Source: Lepidodermella squamata
Taxonomy: Eukaryota; Animalia; Gastrotricha
Direction of reading: 5' to 3'
Assembly (NCBI GenBank): GCA_047495785.1
Contig: JBLDXI010000010.1
Coordinates: forward strand, 1,984,001-2,048,000
DNA: 64,000 nt
Under the pieces are notes generated by a model. The model did no database searches and was not told the DNA's origin. It saw only the letters and a list, made by a program, of their open reading frames with translations. This document shows, piece by piece, positions 51,967-62,638 of the stretch. Position 1 is the stretch's first letter, and every line of letters starts with the position of its first letter. A program made the position numbers and the translations under genes.

Positions 51967-54900
51967 TCACAAAACGTAGCGAACGAATGGCATGGCCATC
52001 ATCGAGCCATCATCGCCGACACACGCCATGTCGAGGCGGATTGATTTCTTGTTACCCACCAAAGCCGAAATCTTGGGATGATGCGTCTCTATCAGTTGGC
52101 GAATGGATAAATCCAACTGCTGCTGACTCTTCTCCTGTGACATCCGCGCCTTGTTGTAGATTACGTAATTGCCAATCGCAACCATACCAACTACGACGCC
52201 ATCCCGATTGAGTCTCTTCAGAATCTCACCCAGTGTAACTCCGGGATTTTCAAAGTTGAAACGGGTCCAAATCGTCCAACTCGGAGCTTTGGGAGCATAG
52301 GGTGGTTTCAACGTGGCATCACGAGGATTGCTCATAATCACAACAGGTTTGCTCAGGTCGAAATGGGTGTTTCTGAACTTGGATAACTGCGAATGGCCCT
52401 AGACGAATTTGATAAGTTCCAAGCAAACCAGACCAGCTACAATCGCTGTTGTAGTTGCAATAGCTGGCGTTATCTGTAACAACTTCAATCAACAATGAAT
52501 GACAAAAAAGATCGAACGAACCTTTCCAGCGATAAGTTTACTCTTCTGCCGATTTGCAGGTTCGATGAAGTAGTTCTCAGCCCGGCAGTTTGAAGCTGCG
52601 ACAATGAAGTCGAGGTGAAAATTGGAATCGTCATCCTTCTCGAATTCAATCGGGGTAATCGAACTGCCATCGATTTCAGCCTGCTCTGGAAGCTTCGCTT
52701 GTAACTCCGCGACCTTCGCCTTCATTTGCTCAGCTCGCTCTTCTTTCAAAATTTGCAAATCACGGTCATTTTCGGCAATCAAGGAATTGCCACGAGGTTC
52801 GAATTTCAGTTCAACCTTAGAAGCGATGGCTTGAATTTTCGACTTGTCCCGAATCTGGGTGATACCGAACAAGCTAGCGTAAAGATTGGCTGCTGAACTG
52901 ACGAAATCGACATGAAGCTCCTGTAAGAAAAGGTTCGAGAAACCTTAGAACTAGAGATTCAAACTCACATTGTCCAAATCAAAGTTCAAAGCTCGCGGGA
53001 ATCTTTTGGCATTGTCCCAAAATGGCTGCCCATCGGATCCAAGTTGATCCTGGGGGAACCTTTCGGTCAACTCAGCAATTTCCGAGTGAAATAACTCTTG
53101 AAATTTCGAGCAAGCCCAGCTGACGCACTGTTCGAAGTTGGTTGGTCGATTTTCTGCGGCGAGAAACTGCACCAAGCTCTCGACGGCTTCCAATCGTTCA
53201 ACTTGCTGGAGATTCGCCAGGAATTGCTCGCCCTCTGCCGCGTATCTTTTGACGTATTGAGCTGGCGAGACGAACAAATCGTGAAATTGTTCACGGGCCC
53301 AGTGAAGCGTATGCTCGATGGCGTTTGGGAAGCTTTTGATCGTACACTGGGCGTAGGACGTTTCGTCAGAAGCCGACAGGCCAGTCGAATAAGGCTCGGT
53401 CAAAGATTGCAATATTACCTAAAGAAAAAGGTTCCAGAACTTGATTTGAGGTTCAAAATCGAACCTAGAAAATCGAGTACTAAAACGCTTCAATTTAGCG
53501 CTACAAAGTTCCGAAGTTCCAAATTAGGATATATCGAAAAAGAAACCTTTGTGGATCCGGTTTCGCCCTTCGTCGCAGATTCGAACATTGGCTTCAAATG
53601 GTAGATGCAACGCTTGTCCAAGTACTCCCTAGCCTGGAGATTATCCAACGCGTTGACAACCGCATCCAAAACGTCGAAAAAATCTTCGTCGTAGATATCT
53701 TCGGTTTCGGGCCCAACTTTGTTCAAATGATACTCGATATTCAAATCGCGGTTAATTGCCTTGACCGCAGCAGCGGCAACCTTCGATTTAGGCTCTTTCA
53801 AATCGTTTTGCCGGAATAGGAATTGGCGGTTGAGATTCGATCGTTCGATGACGTCCATGTCGGTTGTAAGGAGCTTGCCAGCTTTCGAACAAGCCACGCC
53901 CATCATCGCAAAGTTTTTGAGTAACTCGCAGCCGATTGCGCCGGTGCCAACAACAAACAATTTGAGCTTTTCAAGCTTCTCCTGAAATTGCTGGCCGAAA
54001 ATTGCGATTTGGCTGGCGTAGCGACTAGGTTCAGATGGGAAGTCGATGAGTTTTTGCGTTTCAGGTAGACATTCCAAGGCGTCAAAGTACATGAATTGAT
54101 GTAGCGGGACAAATTTCCCAGATACAGCTTTGAAGACTTCTTGAGCCGCGAATCCTCCGATAACAGCGTTCATCGGGCACAAGTTACCGGTTGCTTGAAG
54201 AGCGAAGGCCTTAGCGATTTGCTTTTCGCTTTCTTTTTCGAAACGTTCAGAGAATCTTCGAGCAAATTCTTCGTTTCTAGCAGTTGGCGAGTCGCCGAAT
54301 TCGCCGAGCAAGCAGAAGGCGCGGTGGATCGTAGATTCCCGGCCCATTTTTCCGAAATCGGTGATTAGGAACCTAGGTTCAGCTACGGCTTCAGCTAGTG
54401 GCTTGAATGACATAGATTTGCTGGTTTTGACCTGCAAATAGAAAATTCATACAGGACCGACAATCCAACAATCCAAATTACCTGGGTAACTATGCATTTA
54501 TTGCTTGGTGGCATCTCGCAATCGGCCTCAATAGAGAAAATATCAGCGGTTATCGAAGCAGAGATGCGAAAAGGTCCCCAAGTTCGCCGATCCCCTTCCG
54601 CCCCAGAAACCGATCGATCTAGGGCGAATGTTACCAGATTGCCCTGAGCAAAACCCCTCGAACCCGTTTGCTCGACCAGCTTGACCAAATGAGGCGATGA
54701 CGGGTCGCTGCTACGGTTGATTGAACCGACAAGGCGAGACAGAGGCTCGCCAGCTGTTGGATCGATAACTTCGAATCTGTCGCCGAAATCGCAGAAGAGC
54801 TGGCCGAATAAACCGCGAGTTGACGCTAGAATGAACTTGACCCCGTTCAAGTGACACCATTTGCCAATTTCCTTTGTTTTTTCGTCAATCACGTGATCGC

Positions 54901-55371
54901 AGAGAACCACAACCTGAGCAAGTATAAATGTCCAGCAATTAAATTTCTATAAATATTGGAAATTTACGTGGAATTTGGAGACGAAATCCACGGTAAGGCT
55001 CTCGTCAGCCGCTTCCACGCGAACATAAGGGTTCAGCTCAGCAAATCGATTCCTGCTCGCTTCGGCTCGATTTTTGTTCAGGTCATTAGCGGTCAAATAG
55101 AACTTGAAAGATGCGAAATAAAATTTTGAAATAAAATTTATTAGATTTTTACCTGGGTTCCAAGATCCGAAATTTGCGTCGCTTTTGTGTCGTGAAGCGT
55201 GACAGAGCGAACGCCGCCTAAAATGACGTTTTTCGCGATTTCGGCGCCCAAGCCATTGAGTCCGCTGATGAGAACATCCGCGCCAGCCATTTTACGCATC
55301 GTTGACTCGCCGAGAGTGTAAAGCTGTCGCGAATACAAAGACTCGTCGATTGCGCTATTATTCTTAGTCAT
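51967..55371 (-). CDS. Divergent UBA1-type ubiquitin-like activating enzyme E1, 7 exons, about 1000 aa
   Basis: [42 protein letters not shown], catalytic [18 protein letters not shown] (Cys at 53344-53346), [25 protein letters not shown] and a C-terminal UFD. Exons splice in frame. Confidence 0.95.
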
Positions 55372-55677
55372 AGCCGCCGAGATTTACAAGAAAATTCGCA
55401 AATTCTGTCTAAAATTTGAAAATTCATATGATTTACTCGTGAGTAATGGAGATGGAGAGATGAATCGGCAGTTCTGAAATCTGAAATATCAGGTTGTAGG
55501 ATTTCAGAAAGGTCGAAGCCAAGGTCAATGAGAGTAATAAAATCCAGAAAAAAAACGAAATAGGAAAACTACCGAATCATTTATCGACTCTGTTTTTATG
55601 TTTTGGTAGCAAAATTATAAAATCTATAGCTTCGTAATTTAAAAAATTCAAAAATTTCAAAAAAATGTGCAGAGAAT

Positions 55678-56286
55678 ATCTTTTAGCGGAACCAAATTTG
55701 ACTGTTGCGGAATCTAATTTTAGATGGGCAATAGGTCGCTTTTCAAATATTTCCATAAAATATTTAAGGCAAGATAAATGAAGAAAGCGTCTTATAGATA
55801 TAATTACACGCTGATGAATAGGTTCTATGCTAGATAATTGAGCAGACAAAAAGTGAGCAACGAAAATTGAGCAAGGGCTTTTTAGCAACGATATGAGAGC
55901 AAACGAAATTAGAGCAAATTTAATAATTAATTGTAGCTCTTATTTGGCAGACCGTCATAACAGCAAATACCCAAAACAGCAAACGCGACAGAACAGCAGA
56001 AACACGATGCATCTTTTACATAGTAAGTTTTCGCTGTTTTGTCGCGAAATAAAAAATTTGCTGTTTTGTCGCATTTGCTGTTCTGCGAAGCTGCTGTTTT
56101 GTCGCCGTTTTGTCGCGGCATTATTTATTGTAAACACAATTTGTTCTAAAGTCGTTTTGCTCTAATTTCGTTTGCTCTTATATCGCTGCTCAAAAGCCCT
56201 TGCTCTATTTTCGTTGCTCAATAAGCATAGAACCTTGAAAGTTTCAAAAAGTGAAAATTCCAAATTTTGGCTCCGCTAAAAGATAG
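55678..56286. mobile_element. MITE with ATCTTTTAGCGGAACCAAA termini, containing a nested GGTTCTATG-family MITE (55821-56234) that itself carries an insertion
   Basis: Inverted ends; the inner element shares TIR and GAGCAA subrepeats with 34477/38999. Confidence 0.7.
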
Positions 56287-56923
56287 GCATTCTGGAAAAA
56301 CATTTAAACTTGAAAACATTTAAATTTTAAAATTCGAATTAAATTCTTTTGAATTTTGAATCGAAAATTCGAAATTATTTAATCGATTTAAATGAAAGTC
56401 GTCGATTTGTCACGTCTTTCCCAATACTATTTACAATTGGCCTCTCTGTGACAATTTTAGGCTTCAGAAGATGCCGATCTGAAACTCCGGGTAAAATAAT
56501 TTGTACTCTAGTTGACGGTCTAAAAGGTATAGGGGAACTGAAATAACAAGGTGCCCAATTATCGATAAAAAAGAAAATGTCTATAATTTTCGAAACATTG
56601 GAAAGATTTAGCACTGGAACCTTGTGCCAATAATCCAAACTAAAATTGAATAAAAATTATTCAATATTTCCGCTCTTCAATGCGAATTTTTTGCAAATCA
56701 GAATCATTATTATCGAAAAAAGGGAACACGTGCGCTAAGTGTTACGATTCAACTTTCACGCGGCCTCATCGCCAAGCACGTGCGACGTTGGCCGAGCCGT
56801 TTCAAATCTACTAAATAATATAAAAGTCAATAACGAATCTTGAATTCACTGTAAATCGATATATTCATTTCACGCAAAGATTTGATAGATCAATCAACAT
56901 TGTGTTCTAATCGAAAATAAATC

Positions 56924-57184
56924 ATGTCCGACCGCTTCGACATCACGTTCAACATATTCGGCCACGGTGAGCTGTACAGGTTGAACGTATCGCCTAAAGA
57001 CACGGTGCGTGACGTTATTCGAATGCTGCGATCAGTGGCTGGCGAGCAAGCCATTACGGACAGCGTCAACATTATGCATGGCAATGAACAGCTCGATGAA
57101 AATATGACGCTGGCTCAGTACGGCATCCAACCGCGCCACACCATCCACGTTATTCCGCGCATTCAAGGCGGCCGTCACGCTTGA
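56924..57184 (+). CDS. Novel ubiquitin-like protein precursor, 86 aa, ending GG-RHA
   Basis: Beta-grasp pattern aligns with ubiquitin: LNVSPKDTV, QLDENMTLAQYGIQ, TIHVIPRIQGG. TATA-like TATAAAA near 56819; intronless. Confidence 0.9.
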   Translation: MSDRFDITFNIFGHGELYRLNVSPKDTVRDVIRMLRSVAGEQAITDSVNIMHGNEQLDENMTLAQYGIQPRHTIHVIPRIQGGRHA

Positions 57185-58411
57185 ACGAACTCGCCGCGCG
57201 GTTTCGTCTCGCTGTCAAATTAAAACGGCTGCCTTTTTGTAAAAAAACCGAAATAATTGATAAACTTAAAATTCAAAATTTATTCAGTGGTTTTTTCGAA
57301 AATAAAAACTGTGACCAATTTTCCTACTTTGCTATAAATTAGAGTCGAACCACTATTTTTTCCAATTTGTTTTGAAACGCAAATCTGTTCATGCGGCGTG
57401 TCCTGTACCGTTTACTCATTTTATTATTTTTTTTTAGGGAATTTAAACTAATTTTTGAAATTAATCACACTGGGGACTCCACGATTTCACCGAAGAAATT
57501 TGTTCGGTAATTTTCGGTTTTTACTTGGTTGGACCAAATTTCTTCTTATTTTTTAATCCCATTCATAAGAGACATTTTTGATTACTGTTCTTATGACATT
57601 TTAGATTTTTCTATGATTTTTCTTGCCTTGAGATATTCAGTAAAATCGGAAATAATTAGTTCGCAATTTAGCCGCTAATTAACCGATATTTACTCGGGCA
57701 TTTAGGACCCTGGAACCTCCTATTCAGCCTAACATTTTCCATTGAAGCTTCCAATTACCGAAAAATGAAATTCAATGCGATAAATGCCACATTTTTGGTA
57801 AAAAGTATAAAAGGCGGGCTTTCTTGAAAATTATCGATATTGAAAAATGGCAATTATTCGTCCGATGTGACCTGAGTTGGTTGCCTCTCTTGCCAGAAGC
57901 TTCACGGTTTTTTGAGAGATGGTCCTTAAAATGGATCGAATTCACCGATTCCTGAAAAAAACATTGCACGACTATCTGAAACTCAAGGTTCTGTAATATT
58001 GGCACAAATCAATCGAAAATTCCGCAAAATCATTTCGGATCGCGGTTATAGCGGGACCTTCTCCGTAGGCGCGTTATTGACCTGATTCCCGGGCAAGAAA
58101 AATTTCCTATAAAGCCTTTTCACAGGATGGTGCCATGCAACCTCAAATCCTGTAAAATGCCAATTTCAAAACTGAGAATTTTTAATAAATTAGAGGACAG
58201 CATTATCATCATCCATTTTTTTTGATCTCGAACCGAATTGTAACGAAAATTTGAGAAATATTTCCCCCAGGCAAGATCTATATCGATTGGCAAAAATCGC
58301 TTCAAAAATTACTCATGTTTTATGAAAAAGTGCTGGGCAAAATTATTACACATAAGTACGTCATTATAATTATCCGAATTACGACTATAATTTTTATTTC
58401 CTAAATCGGAA

Positions 58412-58650
58412 TATCTTTTAGCGAAACCAAATATGCTTTTTGCGGAACCAAACTCGAAATATGCTAAAAGTCATTTTTTGAATATTTCTAAGACTTTTAG
58501 GCTGAGCATGAATTCTGAATTGAACACTGCACCTTATGGAGAATTTTGCGCTGAATTTTCTAGAATTATTGTGGCCAATCTTCGATTCAGCTAGAAAAGT
58601 CTAAAATGTGGTTCCGCTCACCGTAAATTTGGTTCCGCTAACAAGAGGAT
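58412..58650. mobile_element. MITE of the GCGGAACCAAA family (related copies at about 10420-10620 and 11850-12030)
   Basis: Inverted GCGGAACCAAA / TTTGGTTCCGCT repeats; internal GAATTCTGAATTGAACACT shared with the SOS intron copy near 11890. Confidence 0.65.
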
Positions 58651-58951
58651 CCTTTCCTGAATTCCATTCGGTTTTTTTTCATTTTTTCAAATTCCTCTTC
58701 GATTTCGCCGATTATTCTATATTTTTCAAGCGATTTTAATCACGCCATGTTTTCCTTTACACCGTGTCATGGCATAAAAAAAATGTGATTTAATCTGTTG
58801 ACTCATCTTGACATCTTGACAATCGCGTGTCATCATTATGGCGCCACTTGGCAAGCAAACGGTTCTTCAAGCACGCGCCTTCTTTCATTTTCGATTTTTC
58901 CACAACAGGTTCATTCAGTTTTCGCCTTACATCTTAGAAATTTTTCTCGCA

Positions 58952-59747
58952 ATGGCTTGTAATTTAACCGGCGCTCTTCGACTGCAACACGATTTGAACA
59001 AGTAAATACAACAATTTTAACACAAATTATTGTATAATCGAATTGTTTCCAATTTTAGGGTGCTTACGAATCCGCACTCATGCGGAACTGCGGCGCCGGT
59101 CGATGACAATTTATTCCAGTGGCGAGGCTTCATCTTTGGGCCGGCTAAATCGCCCTATGCTATGGGCATTTTTCGCGTTCAACTCGATTTCCCGCTAAAC
59201 TACCCTGCCTCGCCGCCTATCGTCAAGTTTCTCGACAACATGTTCCACCCTAATAGTAATAATTATCTTCATAGCATTTTTGAAAAAATTCCTAGACTTT
59301 TTTATAGATATTTTGAATAAATTTTAGATTTTTATATAAATTGGTAATTTCAAAAATTTAATTTTTTTAATTTTTCTATATTTTTTTATTCTTAATTTTA
59401 ATTTTAGTGAAATTTTGAAAATGTTTCAATAATTTATTAGAGAATAAATAAATTAAAAAAATTCAACTTTTTCGAACTGTTTTAATTTTTTTCAATGCTC
59501 GCCCGATTCTTCTACCTTAGTTAATTCAAGCGGTGGCGTTTGCGTCAGTCACTTGAAGCAAGGAAATTGGGATCCTAGCATGGATGTCGCCGCTATTTTG
59601 GAGTGTCTAGCTTCACTTTTGCTGAACCCGAATCCAAATAGCCACATTAATCGCGACGCTGCCGACTTGCTGCTGAAAAATCCCGCCGAGTACGAATCTC
59701 GCTGCCGCGAAATCGCCCGTCAAACCAGCCAACGGCCAAGGAGCTAA
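58952..59747 (+). CDS. Ubiquitin-conjugating enzyme E2, divergent RAD6/UBE2D-like, 3 exons
   Basis: Exons 58952-59001, 59059-59255 and 59521-59747. W..IFGPAKSPY..GIF, FPLNYPASPP, MFHPNINSSGGVCVSHL (HPN and catalytic Cys), SLLLNPNPNS. Confidence 0.93.
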
Positions 59748-59848: not shown

Positions 59849-62638
59849 ATGGGAAAAGACAAGAAGAAGAGCAAGAAGACCAAGGCCGGTGCGGAGGCAG
59901 CGCCTGATTCCAAGCTACAACCGGCTCCGATTGAAGAAAATCCGGCTAATAACTTGCCAGAAACTTTGGTTGCTTTGTCCAATGCGAAAGATGGAGAAAC
60001 TCCGAATCAGCCATCTTTGGTTCCAGGTTCTGAGCTCCCAGTTGAGAGCAAACCCGAAGCTCTTTGCCAAGTGGAACAAATGGTGGTTAAAGAGAATCCT
60101 GTTAATCACGAACTTGAAAGTTCGGCAGCCATGACTGACGCGATACCGTCTTCAGTTACCGAAGCTCTAGCACAAGGCGAGAGCAAGGCCGAAGCTCCTC
60201 GCCAAATCAAAGTTCATGAACCTGCTTTTCATGAAAGCATCGACTCACCCGAAAATTCAGCAACTATATCCTCTGCGAAAGATGAGAAAAAGTCACTTGA
60301 ACCTTGTTTTGTTGGCGATGCTGAGATCAAATATTCAGCTGTTGGCCAAGCCGAACCAATGGAACAAGAAGTAGAGAGCGCTCCGATAAGTTTCCAAGCT
60401 GAGAATCCGATCCAAGTTGGGGAGAACGTCGAAGCTCCTATTCACGAAGAGAACGTCGAAGCTCCTGTTCACGAATCTGCAACCACCAGTGAGCTGAATT
60501 CGGAAGTCGAAAAGGTTCCAGACGCAACTGTTTCGGAAAATGTTAGCACACGCGATTCTACGGTTGAGGAATCCCCGCAGGAACTTGGACAGGAACCTTC
60601 AGAGATTGTAAGCCAGCCTCGATTCGGCCAGTTGTCACAATCGGTTTACCACAATTCGCCCAAAGCTGTTCAAGATTCCGAGCCGAAGACGGAAGCTGGA
60701 AAGCAATCTGGCACTCCTTCGTCCCTTCACAGTAAAAAATCCGCGAAGTCCGCCTTTCAACCGAAAGATAACTCAGACCAATCGCCAGCTGAGCTGCCAA
60801 GCCCTGTTAACAAGAAACCGCACTTGGATATCGGCAAATCGCAGATGGATATCGAAAACCTCGCGAGCCCTGATCAGAAGAGCCACAAGCATCATCGCAA
60901 GGGCAGGAAGAACCAAGCGTCCGCGCCCCCGCACGATCCTGATGATGTCGAGTGGGCTGATGATAGCAGGAGCAAGTCTTCGTCGAGGAACGATAAGGCA
61001 ACCCGTCGCAAGGCGAACCAACGATCGAGCGACGACGAACCGCCTGCCAAGGCGAAGCTACCGGCTGCGTCCAATCAGGAAGCTGAGGAAAGGTTCAAGC
61101 AAAAGCTTGCCGAGTTTCAATACCGCGGCATGGCGATCAAGCCTGCTATCCGGCTTCAGAACGTTGGCAATACCGTAAGTTTTTTCTTACTTAATTTCTT
61201 AATTTAATTCATAGATTTCAGTGCTACGTCAACAGCGCTCTTCAGGCAATCCTGCCGATTGAAGAGTTGTATCGATACGTCACAAGCCATCCTTCTTCCC
61301 AACCTATAACTCGAACCGTTACCAAGTTCGTGAAGCTGGCCTATGAAACCCCAGGATCTTACCACGATCCAACCGATATCCGATCGGCAGTTTCGTCTCG
61401 CGTACGAACCTTCCAGATTGGCCGGCAAGATGACGCCATGAATTTTCTGGCGTTGGTTCTTCAAAAACTGCATGCAGAGTGGAACGAAATCGGCGAGCAG
61501 CCTCCTTTTCAAATCATTCAAGCTGTTGGCCAGGAATCTTGCCGCGACGTTGCCCAAAGTAAGCTAAATTTACATATGAAACTTCGTAACAAATTCTTCG
61601 AAAAAACAACAGAACATTGGCGTTACGATTCGAGTTGCCACATGTCTGAGATAACTCGGCTGTTGCGGTTCCAAGAAATCACGATCGCTAAATGCTCCAA
61701 GTGTCGCAAAGTCATTCCAGCATATTCGGCGTTTCAGTGCTTCAACATTTTGATTCTCGCGTTCAAAGAAGAAGATCGCAAACGGTCGCTCACGTTGAAC
61801 GACCTGCTCGAGCAACACTTTGCTGAGAAGGCTCGAAATTTCAAGGATGACCCTTGCCCGTTCTGCTATGAAAATGCTTTCAACCTGGAGGAGCGTGGTA
61901 TTGCTTCGTGCCCGCCGTATCTCATCGTTCAGCTGGCCAGGATTGAAGAGAATCTGATGACCGGGCGTCGGTCGAAGATCGATAGCCACGTCACTTATCC
62001 GAAGAGGTAGGATGATTGACCTTACGAAGTTGCTTTTTAATCTTTTTCCTAGGCTTGAGATTCCCGATAGCTCCACGAATCTTGCTGCTTACGAGCTCAT
62101 TTCCGTTATCAATCACTCCGGCTCACTGGAACACGGCCATTACTTCACCTATTCGAAGCGTGGCGAAGATTGGTTCGTCTTCAACGATTCCAGCATCGAA
62201 AAGCTGACGAGTAGCAATCACTTCTCAAACAACTCGAACGCGTGCCTGTTTGTCTATCGAAAAGTTGACCAGCAAATGGTTGAATCCAAGCCAGAACTCA
62301 CCGCAGATCTCGACCAGCCTGGCATTGAACCTCGCGCAAAATTTGACGAACCTATCACTGTTGAACAGCCTGTTTTACCCTCGCCAAGTGAGCCACCTTC
62401 TTTTTCTGATTATCGCCCTCTTAGCTACGGGTCTATCGAAGATGAGACCAACGAACCTGCGAATCATGATTGCAGCATTAACGCTCGATTACTCAACGAA
62501 GACGCCGAGAAGAAGCGACGAATCTCAAAAAAGGCTACGCTGATAGCTGTTGGCTTGGTTACGACCATTGGCTGCGGTGTTTTGCTGTGGTACTTCTTAT
62601 CTCGCTCTGACAACAAAGTTCCTGCGCAAAGCCCTTAA
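59849..62638 (+). CDS. USP-family deubiquitinase with acidic disordered N-terminus and C-terminal transmembrane anchor, 3 exons
   Basis: Exons 59849-61174, 61222-62006 and 62053-62638. Cys box LQNVGNT|CYVNSALQ, QDDAMNFL, His box HSGSLEHGHY...WFVFNDS; terminal hydrophobic LIAVGLVTTIGCGVLLWYFL. Confidence 0.92.

Follow-up and report, generated by a model that had tools for sequence, protein, structure and literature searches.

Dedicated pairs of activating (E1) and conjugating (E2) enzymes, such as those of ISG15, FAT10, NEDD8 and SUMO, show how cells separate parallel protein-tagging systems, and to our knowledge the pairs derived from UBA1 are all vertebrate. Here we describe a candidate pair of this kind from the gastrotrich Lepidodermella squamata, encoded in a 64,000-nucleotide window of its genome (positions 1,984,001 to 2,048,000 of contig JBLDXI010000010.1, assembly GCA_047495785.1) in which a UBA1-type E1 gene and an E2 gene stand on either side of a gene for a ubiquitin-like protein (Ubl). 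The two surfaces expected to dock to each other, the ubiquitin-fold domain (UFD) of the E1 and helix A of the E2, have both lost charged residues. In yeast Uba1 the UFD's acidic patch is made up of E1004, D1008, D1014 and E1016; the last two are salt-bridged by arginines of E2 helix A, and charge reversal on one side kills transfer while reversal on both sides rescues it (PMC6656757). The E2 motif, (K/R)Rxx(K/R), is highly conserved, and the UFD sets the choice of E2 (reviewed in PMC12355090). Orthogonal cascades have been engineered by combining the UFD substitutions E1004K, D1014K and E1016K with changes at E2 positions 5, 6 and 9 and with Q576R, S589R and D591R in the adenylation domain (PMC5738348).

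We compared the E1 tail of the window with a profile of UBA1 UFDs. Where UBA1 orthologues carry the acidic patch E1004/D1008/D1014/E1016 (yeast numbering throughout), this E1 has D, V, M and A; Asp is also present at 1010 and 1011, and the acids lost are D1008 (to V), D1014 (to M) and E1016 (to A). The last two correspond to human D1047 and E1049, for which a first-pass annotation of this DNA had claimed replacement by Met and Ala; the strings it quoted occur in the window, and the profile alignment puts Met and Ala at those positions. We then surveyed UBA1-family tails from metagenome contigs and a protein library, 101 distinct ones in all, with the host's canonical copies aligned alongside. 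An acid occupies position 1014 in 90% of these tails and position 1016 in 82%; only 4 of the 101 lack one at both, and for some of those four the alignment is doubtful. The double loss is rare, and more than chance is at work in it.

The E2 lies on the plus strand in three exons and encodes 157 residues of UBC fold, core only, with UQ_con matches on exons 2 and 3 (Pfam), HPN at residue 80 and Cys90 in the active site. The first-pass annotation had ended it at 59001, and it in fact continues to 59747; the N-terminus and the CVSHL string reported there were both recovered, in exon 1 (58952-59001) and exon 3 (59541-59555), respectively. The UFD segment and the E2 exons are as follows.

51988..52035, minus strand: UFD segment aligned with yeast Uba1 1003-1018, where the acidic patch lies (profile alignment; survey of 101 tails)
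58952..59001, plus strand: E2 exon 1, with helix A (L9, R10, H13, N16, K17) and N-terminus MACNLTGALRLQHDLNK (sequence, alignment)
59059..59255, plus strand: E2 exon 2, the UBC core up to HPN (Pfam UQ_con; PDB matches to Ubc4 and RAD6)
59521..59747, plus strand: E2 exon 3, with Cys90 within CVSHL at 59541-59555 and the C-terminal helices (Pfam UQ_con; PDB matches to RAD6 and UBE2A)

In an ungapped register, fixed by aligning exon 2 with Ubc4 from the PDB and by an alignment with host E2s, Ubc4 residues K4, R5, R8 and A11 correspond to L9, R10, H13 and N16 of the window E2. The basic motif therefore reads L9-R10-x-x-H13 in the window, with N13 in a second copy on another contig (C48, below). 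The charge loss that had been claimed for this helix thus holds for two of the three motif residues, the first and the third, whereas R10 and K17 remain. The RAD6-like E2 of the same animal keeps a full basic helix, ARRRLMRDFKR. Within the genome the only close relative of the window E2 is its twin on C48, and the next host E2s are ≤49% identical. In one host E2 (L097) the third motif residue is Met, and another divergent RAD6-like E2 exon (L098, G000:C38:194272-197436) is 44% identical to exon 2 of the window E2.

The whole cassette is repeated on contig C48 of this 121-Mb, 151-contig genome in the same order: USP, low-complexity open reading frame (ORF), E2, Ubl and E1. The C48 copy retains both features, the loss of acids from the UFD and the loss of the basic motif from the E2, whose N-terminus there is MACNLTGALRLQNDLNK and in which CVSHL is also present. 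Its E1 is intact over all 1008 codons and has splice sites as in the window copy. Synonymous divergence (dS) between the cassette copies is ∼0.3 to 0.4 for E1 and E2, and the ratio of nonsynonymous to synonymous divergence (dN/dS, window versus C48) is 0.14 for the E2 and 0.21 for the E1; purifying selection acts on both genes. Within the final stretch of the E1, the UFD tail is the best conserved part, with 26 of its last 28 residues identical between the copies versus 84 of the other 123 (Fisher p = 0.009), and exon 1 of the E2, which carries helix A, is identical at 16 of 17 residues.

The E1 gene, on the minus strand, comprises 1008 codons in seven exons separated by GT-AG introns of 48 to 128 nt (splice model).

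55153..55371, minus strand: E1 exon 1, with the start codon and the start of the inactive adenylation domain (Pfam ThiF; GT-AG splice model)
54968..55102, minus strand: E1 exon 2 (weak Pfam ThiF; splice model)
54482..54913, minus strand: E1 exon 3, the FCCH region (splice model; 90% identity to the C48 copy)
53547..54431, minus strand: E1 exon 4, the four-helix bundle and active adenylation domain (Pfam E1_4HB and ThiF; PDB match to human UBA1, 323 bits; alignment)
53547-53549, minus strand: Lys at the position of human Q608 (alignment)
52969..53418, minus strand: E1 exon 5, the SCCH domain with catalytic Cys582 at 53344-53346 (Pfam UBA_E1_SCCH; CTIKSFPN motif)
52522..52920, minus strand: E1 exon 6, the second half of the SCCH domain (Pfam UBA_E1_SCCH; splice model)
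51967..52473, minus strand: E1 exon 7, with the adenylation domain's end, linker and UFD (Pfam E1_UFD; splice model)
52399..52401, minus strand: in-frame TAG at E1 codon 865 of 1008, which is CAG (Gln) in the C48 copy and in a fragment on contig C31

The TAG is in the last exon, 143 codons before the natural stop, with the linker and UFD downstream of it. It was overlooked in the first-pass annotation, whose quoted UFD stands downstream of it. The reading frame through the UFD is therefore broken in the window E1 and uninterrupted in the C48 E1; no other stop and no frameshift interrupts the E1 or the E2 on either contig. Because codon 865 specifies Gln in canonical UBA1s and is CAG both in the C48 copy and in the C31 fragment, the TAG is a derived, single C-to-T change. 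Derived changes downstream of the stop, polarized against other UBA1s, are symmetric (9 in the window versus 9 in the C48 copy); the window tail has therefore been drifting only briefly, and the TAG is recent. Two ways of bypassing it were considered and rejected: an 18-nt GT...AG stretch that spans the TAG is too short for an intron here and is coding on C48, and with an alternative acceptor the conserved IxPAIATTT segment would be lost. We know of no readthrough motif that fits its context, TAG GGC CAT.

The window E1 is thus probably truncated, and the product of this copy would be at best an 864-residue E1 without the UFD. Such a UFD-less protein might be produced, the TAG being in the last exon, where for that reason exon-junction-dependent mRNA decay would not be expected. 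With the window copy lacking the UFD at best, the working E1 would therefore be the intact C48 copy, and the functional pair, if there is one, would consist of the C48 E1 and either copy of the E2. The C31 fragment (L103 ∼1180-1771; G000:C31 ∼1389014-1389604) is 600 bp long and 89% identical to window positions 52235-52827; it covers the end of E1 exon 6, intron 6 and the start of exon 7 and then loses frame, and it seems to be the decayed remnant of a third E1 tail. The premature stop in one of the two full cassettes means that redundancy between them is already being lost.

By its sequence, the window E1 has all of the catalytic hallmarks of a canonical E1, and the canonical domain set (ThiF twice, E1_4HB, UBA_E1_SCCH and E1_UFD) was found on successive exons when these were searched against Pfam one by one; the ORF at 51967-52341 (minus strand) holds the UFD tail as its end and accounts for the E1_UFD match. 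The residues that contact the modifier are altered. Human UBA1 Q608, S621 and D623, equivalent to Q576, S589 and D591 of the engineered E1, have been mutated for acceptance of mutant ubiquitin (PMC5738348). In an alignment with host and other UBA1s these positions are K, G and S in the window E1, which suggests that this E1 no longer reads ubiquitin. The G and S lie within 53370-53420 (minus strand), where the conserved ESGTLG motif is ESATKG. In human UBA1 the three residues are the readers of ubiquitin R42 and R72; in a manual alignment the neighboring Ubl has N at ubiquitin position 42, retains R at 72 and has Q in place of R74.

We next examined the origin of this E1. Its exon 4 scores highest in the PDB against human UBA1 (323 bits, versus 259 for UBA7 and 243 for UBA6). 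On contig C54 of the same genome, three canonical UBA1 genes stand in tandem (L009, L011; G000:C54:3098001-3118000). They are 53 to 60% identical to it over exon 4, and their tails keep the acidic patch (NDSTGEDVEVP, EDADGNDQYEMP and NEDEDVEVP), although EDADGNDQYEMPQVHY, the tail of the middle paralogue, is partly divergent. In a maximum-likelihood tree the window and C48 E1s are sister to this trio on a long stem, with 99% support in the Shimodaira-Hasegawa-like approximate likelihood ratio test (SH-aLRT). To judge from these alignments and this topology, the window E1 is a lineage-specific duplicate of host UBA1 that diverged quickly. Orthology to UBA6 or UBA7 is ruled out by the PDB scores and by the position in the tree with host UBA1s. 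Virus-derived genes just beyond the window prompted us to consider a giant-virus origin, which we rejected, as the E1 branches with host UBA1s and has host-type introns of ∼50 nt.

Homologue searches, run exon by exon, found no orthologue of the E1 or E2 outside this genome by any route, in collections that may lack close relatives. A word search with E2 exon 2 returned no match, and one with E1 exon 4 returned a best hit of ∼53% identity at full coverage and no orthologue. HMMER against 1.84 billion representatives gave a best identity of 48% and no E1 orthologue, with the qualification that clustering at 50% could hide one. The JGI metagenomes yielded canonical UBA1s only, IMG/VR yielded no match, and no description of such an E1-Ubl-E2 cassette was found in the literature.

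The window is intron-bearing animal DNA, and the cassette in it adjoins USP genes. The neighbors of the E1 and E2 are the following.

56924..57184, plus strand: ubiquitin-like ORF of 86 codons between E1 and E2, ending RIQGG-RHA (Pfam Rad60-SLD and ubiquitin; conserved on C48)
59849-61207, plus strand: low-complexity acidic and Ser-rich ORF of 452 codons after the E2 (syntenic on C48, 72% identity)
61267-62010 onward, plus strand: USP-like ORF (syntenic on C48, ∼80% identity)

The Ubl is evolving far faster than its neighbors, with a dN/dS of 0.64 between window and C48, and the tail after its GG is SRHA (four residues) on C48 versus RHA in the window.

Our best reading of this locus, held tentatively, is that the E1 and E2 form a co-adapted and at least partly insulated pair; binding, co-adaptation and insulation are each something that we infer. 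We prefer it because the loss on the E1 is rare, a matching loss is found on the E2, both are conserved between cassettes and the canonical paralogues keep their charges, and also because a private Ubl and USPs are linked to the pair and there is experimental precedent at the same residues. The UFD and helix A surfaces would most likely have co-adapted, with the E1 passing the neighboring Ubl to the neighboring E2 through a charge-poor contact between them, and with little cross-talk between the cassette enzymes and the ubiquitin E1 or ordinary E2s. A private pair arising by compensatory change had been proposed in the first-pass annotation. The proposal gains from the fact that the changed positions are the docking residues of canonical enzymes (PMC6656757, PMC12355090) and the sites altered in orthogonal pairs (PMC5738348), that they are kept on C48 and that host canonical UBA1s and the RAD6-like E2 retain the charges; it loses in that the window's own E1 is interrupted by the TAG before the UFD.

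Several further observations weigh against the co-adapted pair. The two cassette copies come from one genome, and their conservation speaks to constraint, not to covariation. The interface was proposed to have become more hydrophobic, which is accurate only in part: the E2 residues expected opposite the lost D1014 and E1016, at 13 (H or N) and 16 (N), are polar, and matching charge loss is the better description. Asp is still present at UFD positions 1004, 1010 and 1011, as are R10 and K17 on the E2, and with these charges electrostatic docking to ordinary partners may survive in part. The stop codon and the decayed C31 fragment show parts of the system being lost. Finally, the UFD of Uba1 is plastic and charges E2s with incomplete motifs, namely, Cdc34 and Ubc15 (PMC6656757), and because canonical Uba1 tolerates these, charge loss alone is no proof of insulation.

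The same plasticity underlies the rival that survives best, which we nevertheless regard as somewhat unlikely: the pair is not insulated, charges have been lost by drift that a plastic interface tolerates, and either canonical UBA1 charges the E2 via R10, K17 and its N-terminal extension or the E1 serves ordinary E2s. Uba1 binds helix A in several ways and makes up for lost contacts, as with the partial motifs of Cdc34 and Ubc15 (PMC6656757), and the charges retained on both sides here, together with the Met at the third motif position of host E2 L097, fit such tolerance. However, the third motif residue is kept even by the atypical Cdc34 and Ubc15 (PMC6656757) and is H or N in the cassette E2s, the double loss of D1014 and E1016 is rare, mutation of such residues abolishes transfer (PMC6656757, PMC5738348), and between the copies no part of the UFD is better conserved than the changed tail.

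An error of assembly, or a polymorphism of which the TAG would be one allele, would leave the animal with a full-length window E1, but we consider this unlikely. The single C-to-T difference from the CAG of two other copies would be explained in this way, as would the 143 codons past the TAG, which stay open and in which derived changes are not in excess, but nothing in the sequence signals an error, and no CAG haplotig at C10-level identity was found in the assembly. Quite improbable, in our view, is a decaying cassette in which relaxed constraint, not a new function, accounts for the odd residues at the interface and the window E1 is a pseudogene, for although the TAG at codon 865, the frame-broken 600-bp C31 fragment, the faster evolution of the E1 after the stop than before it (dN/dS of 0.34 versus 0.18) and the high dN/dS of the Ubl all point that way, dN/dS is well below 1 for E1 and E2 over a dS of ∼0.3 to 0.4, neither gene has any other stop or frameshift in either copy, the 9-versus-9 symmetry makes the TAG recent and the catalytic motifs are intact.

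Returning to the co-adapted pair, a wider interpretation, which is possible though doubtful, is that the locus encodes a naturally orthogonal invertebrate Ubl cascade, built from the animal's own UBA1 and a RAD6/UBC4-like E2, in which the docking surface and the Ubl pocket would have been recoded at the very residues that engineers chose and in which the genes for E1, Ubl, E2 and USPs are linked. Such a cascade would be the natural counterpart of engineered "orthogonal ubiquitin transfer" pairs. If this is true, the gastrotrich pair would be an independent, invertebrate dedicated pair, recently derived from UBA1, with its specificity changes at a few known contact residues. It would let the evolution of E1-E2 orthogonality be studied in a compact natural experiment and provide a ready-made template for orthogonal cascades made by removing charge, not by reversing it.

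Compared with UBA1 and its E2s, as seen in the Uba1-Ubc4, Uba1-Cdc34 and Uba1-Ubc15 structures, the window pair shares the E1 plan of inactive and active adenylation domains, FCCH, SCCH, 4HB and UFD, the catalytic Cys and ATP-binding residues, and the UBC fold, HPN and active-site Cys of the E2, and its E1 is phylogenetically a host UBA1 duplicate. It differs in the UFD, whose acidic patch is largely lost (D1008V/D1014M/E1016A), at Q608/S621/D623 (K/G/S), in the L-R-x-x-H/N motif of the E2 and in being clustered with its own Ubl. Class I E2s of the RAD6/UBE2A-B and UBC4/UBE2D types are the best matches for both halves of the window E2, which is likewise core-only with HPN and Cys; unlike them, it lacks two of the three basic residues of helix A and has CVSHL instead of CLDIL. 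In the vertebrate UBA7-UBE2L6-ISG15 and UBA6-UBE2Z-FAT10 cascades, too, an E1 of the UBA1 type has a Ubl of its own and a dedicated E2, which is selected by way of the UFD and of helix A/beta1-beta2 in the E2. The window E1 is not orthologous to theirs, however; the UBA7 tail is acidic, UBA6-like tails keep at least one acid and the vertebrate genes are not clustered as E1-Ubl-E2. Closest in the positions altered are the engineered xUba1-xUbc1 and xUba1-xUbcH7 pairs (PMC5738348), for which orthogonality was shown and with which we draw the parallel from sequence: in both the engineered and the gastrotrich enzymes UFD D1014 and E1016, E2 helix A positions 5 and 9 (UbcH7 numbering) and Q608/S621/D623 of the active adenylation domain are changed. 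The charges were reversed in the engineered pairs, whereas in the gastrotrich they have been removed (the E1 has Met and Ala, the E2 Leu and His or Asn), and the position of E1004 is still acidic.

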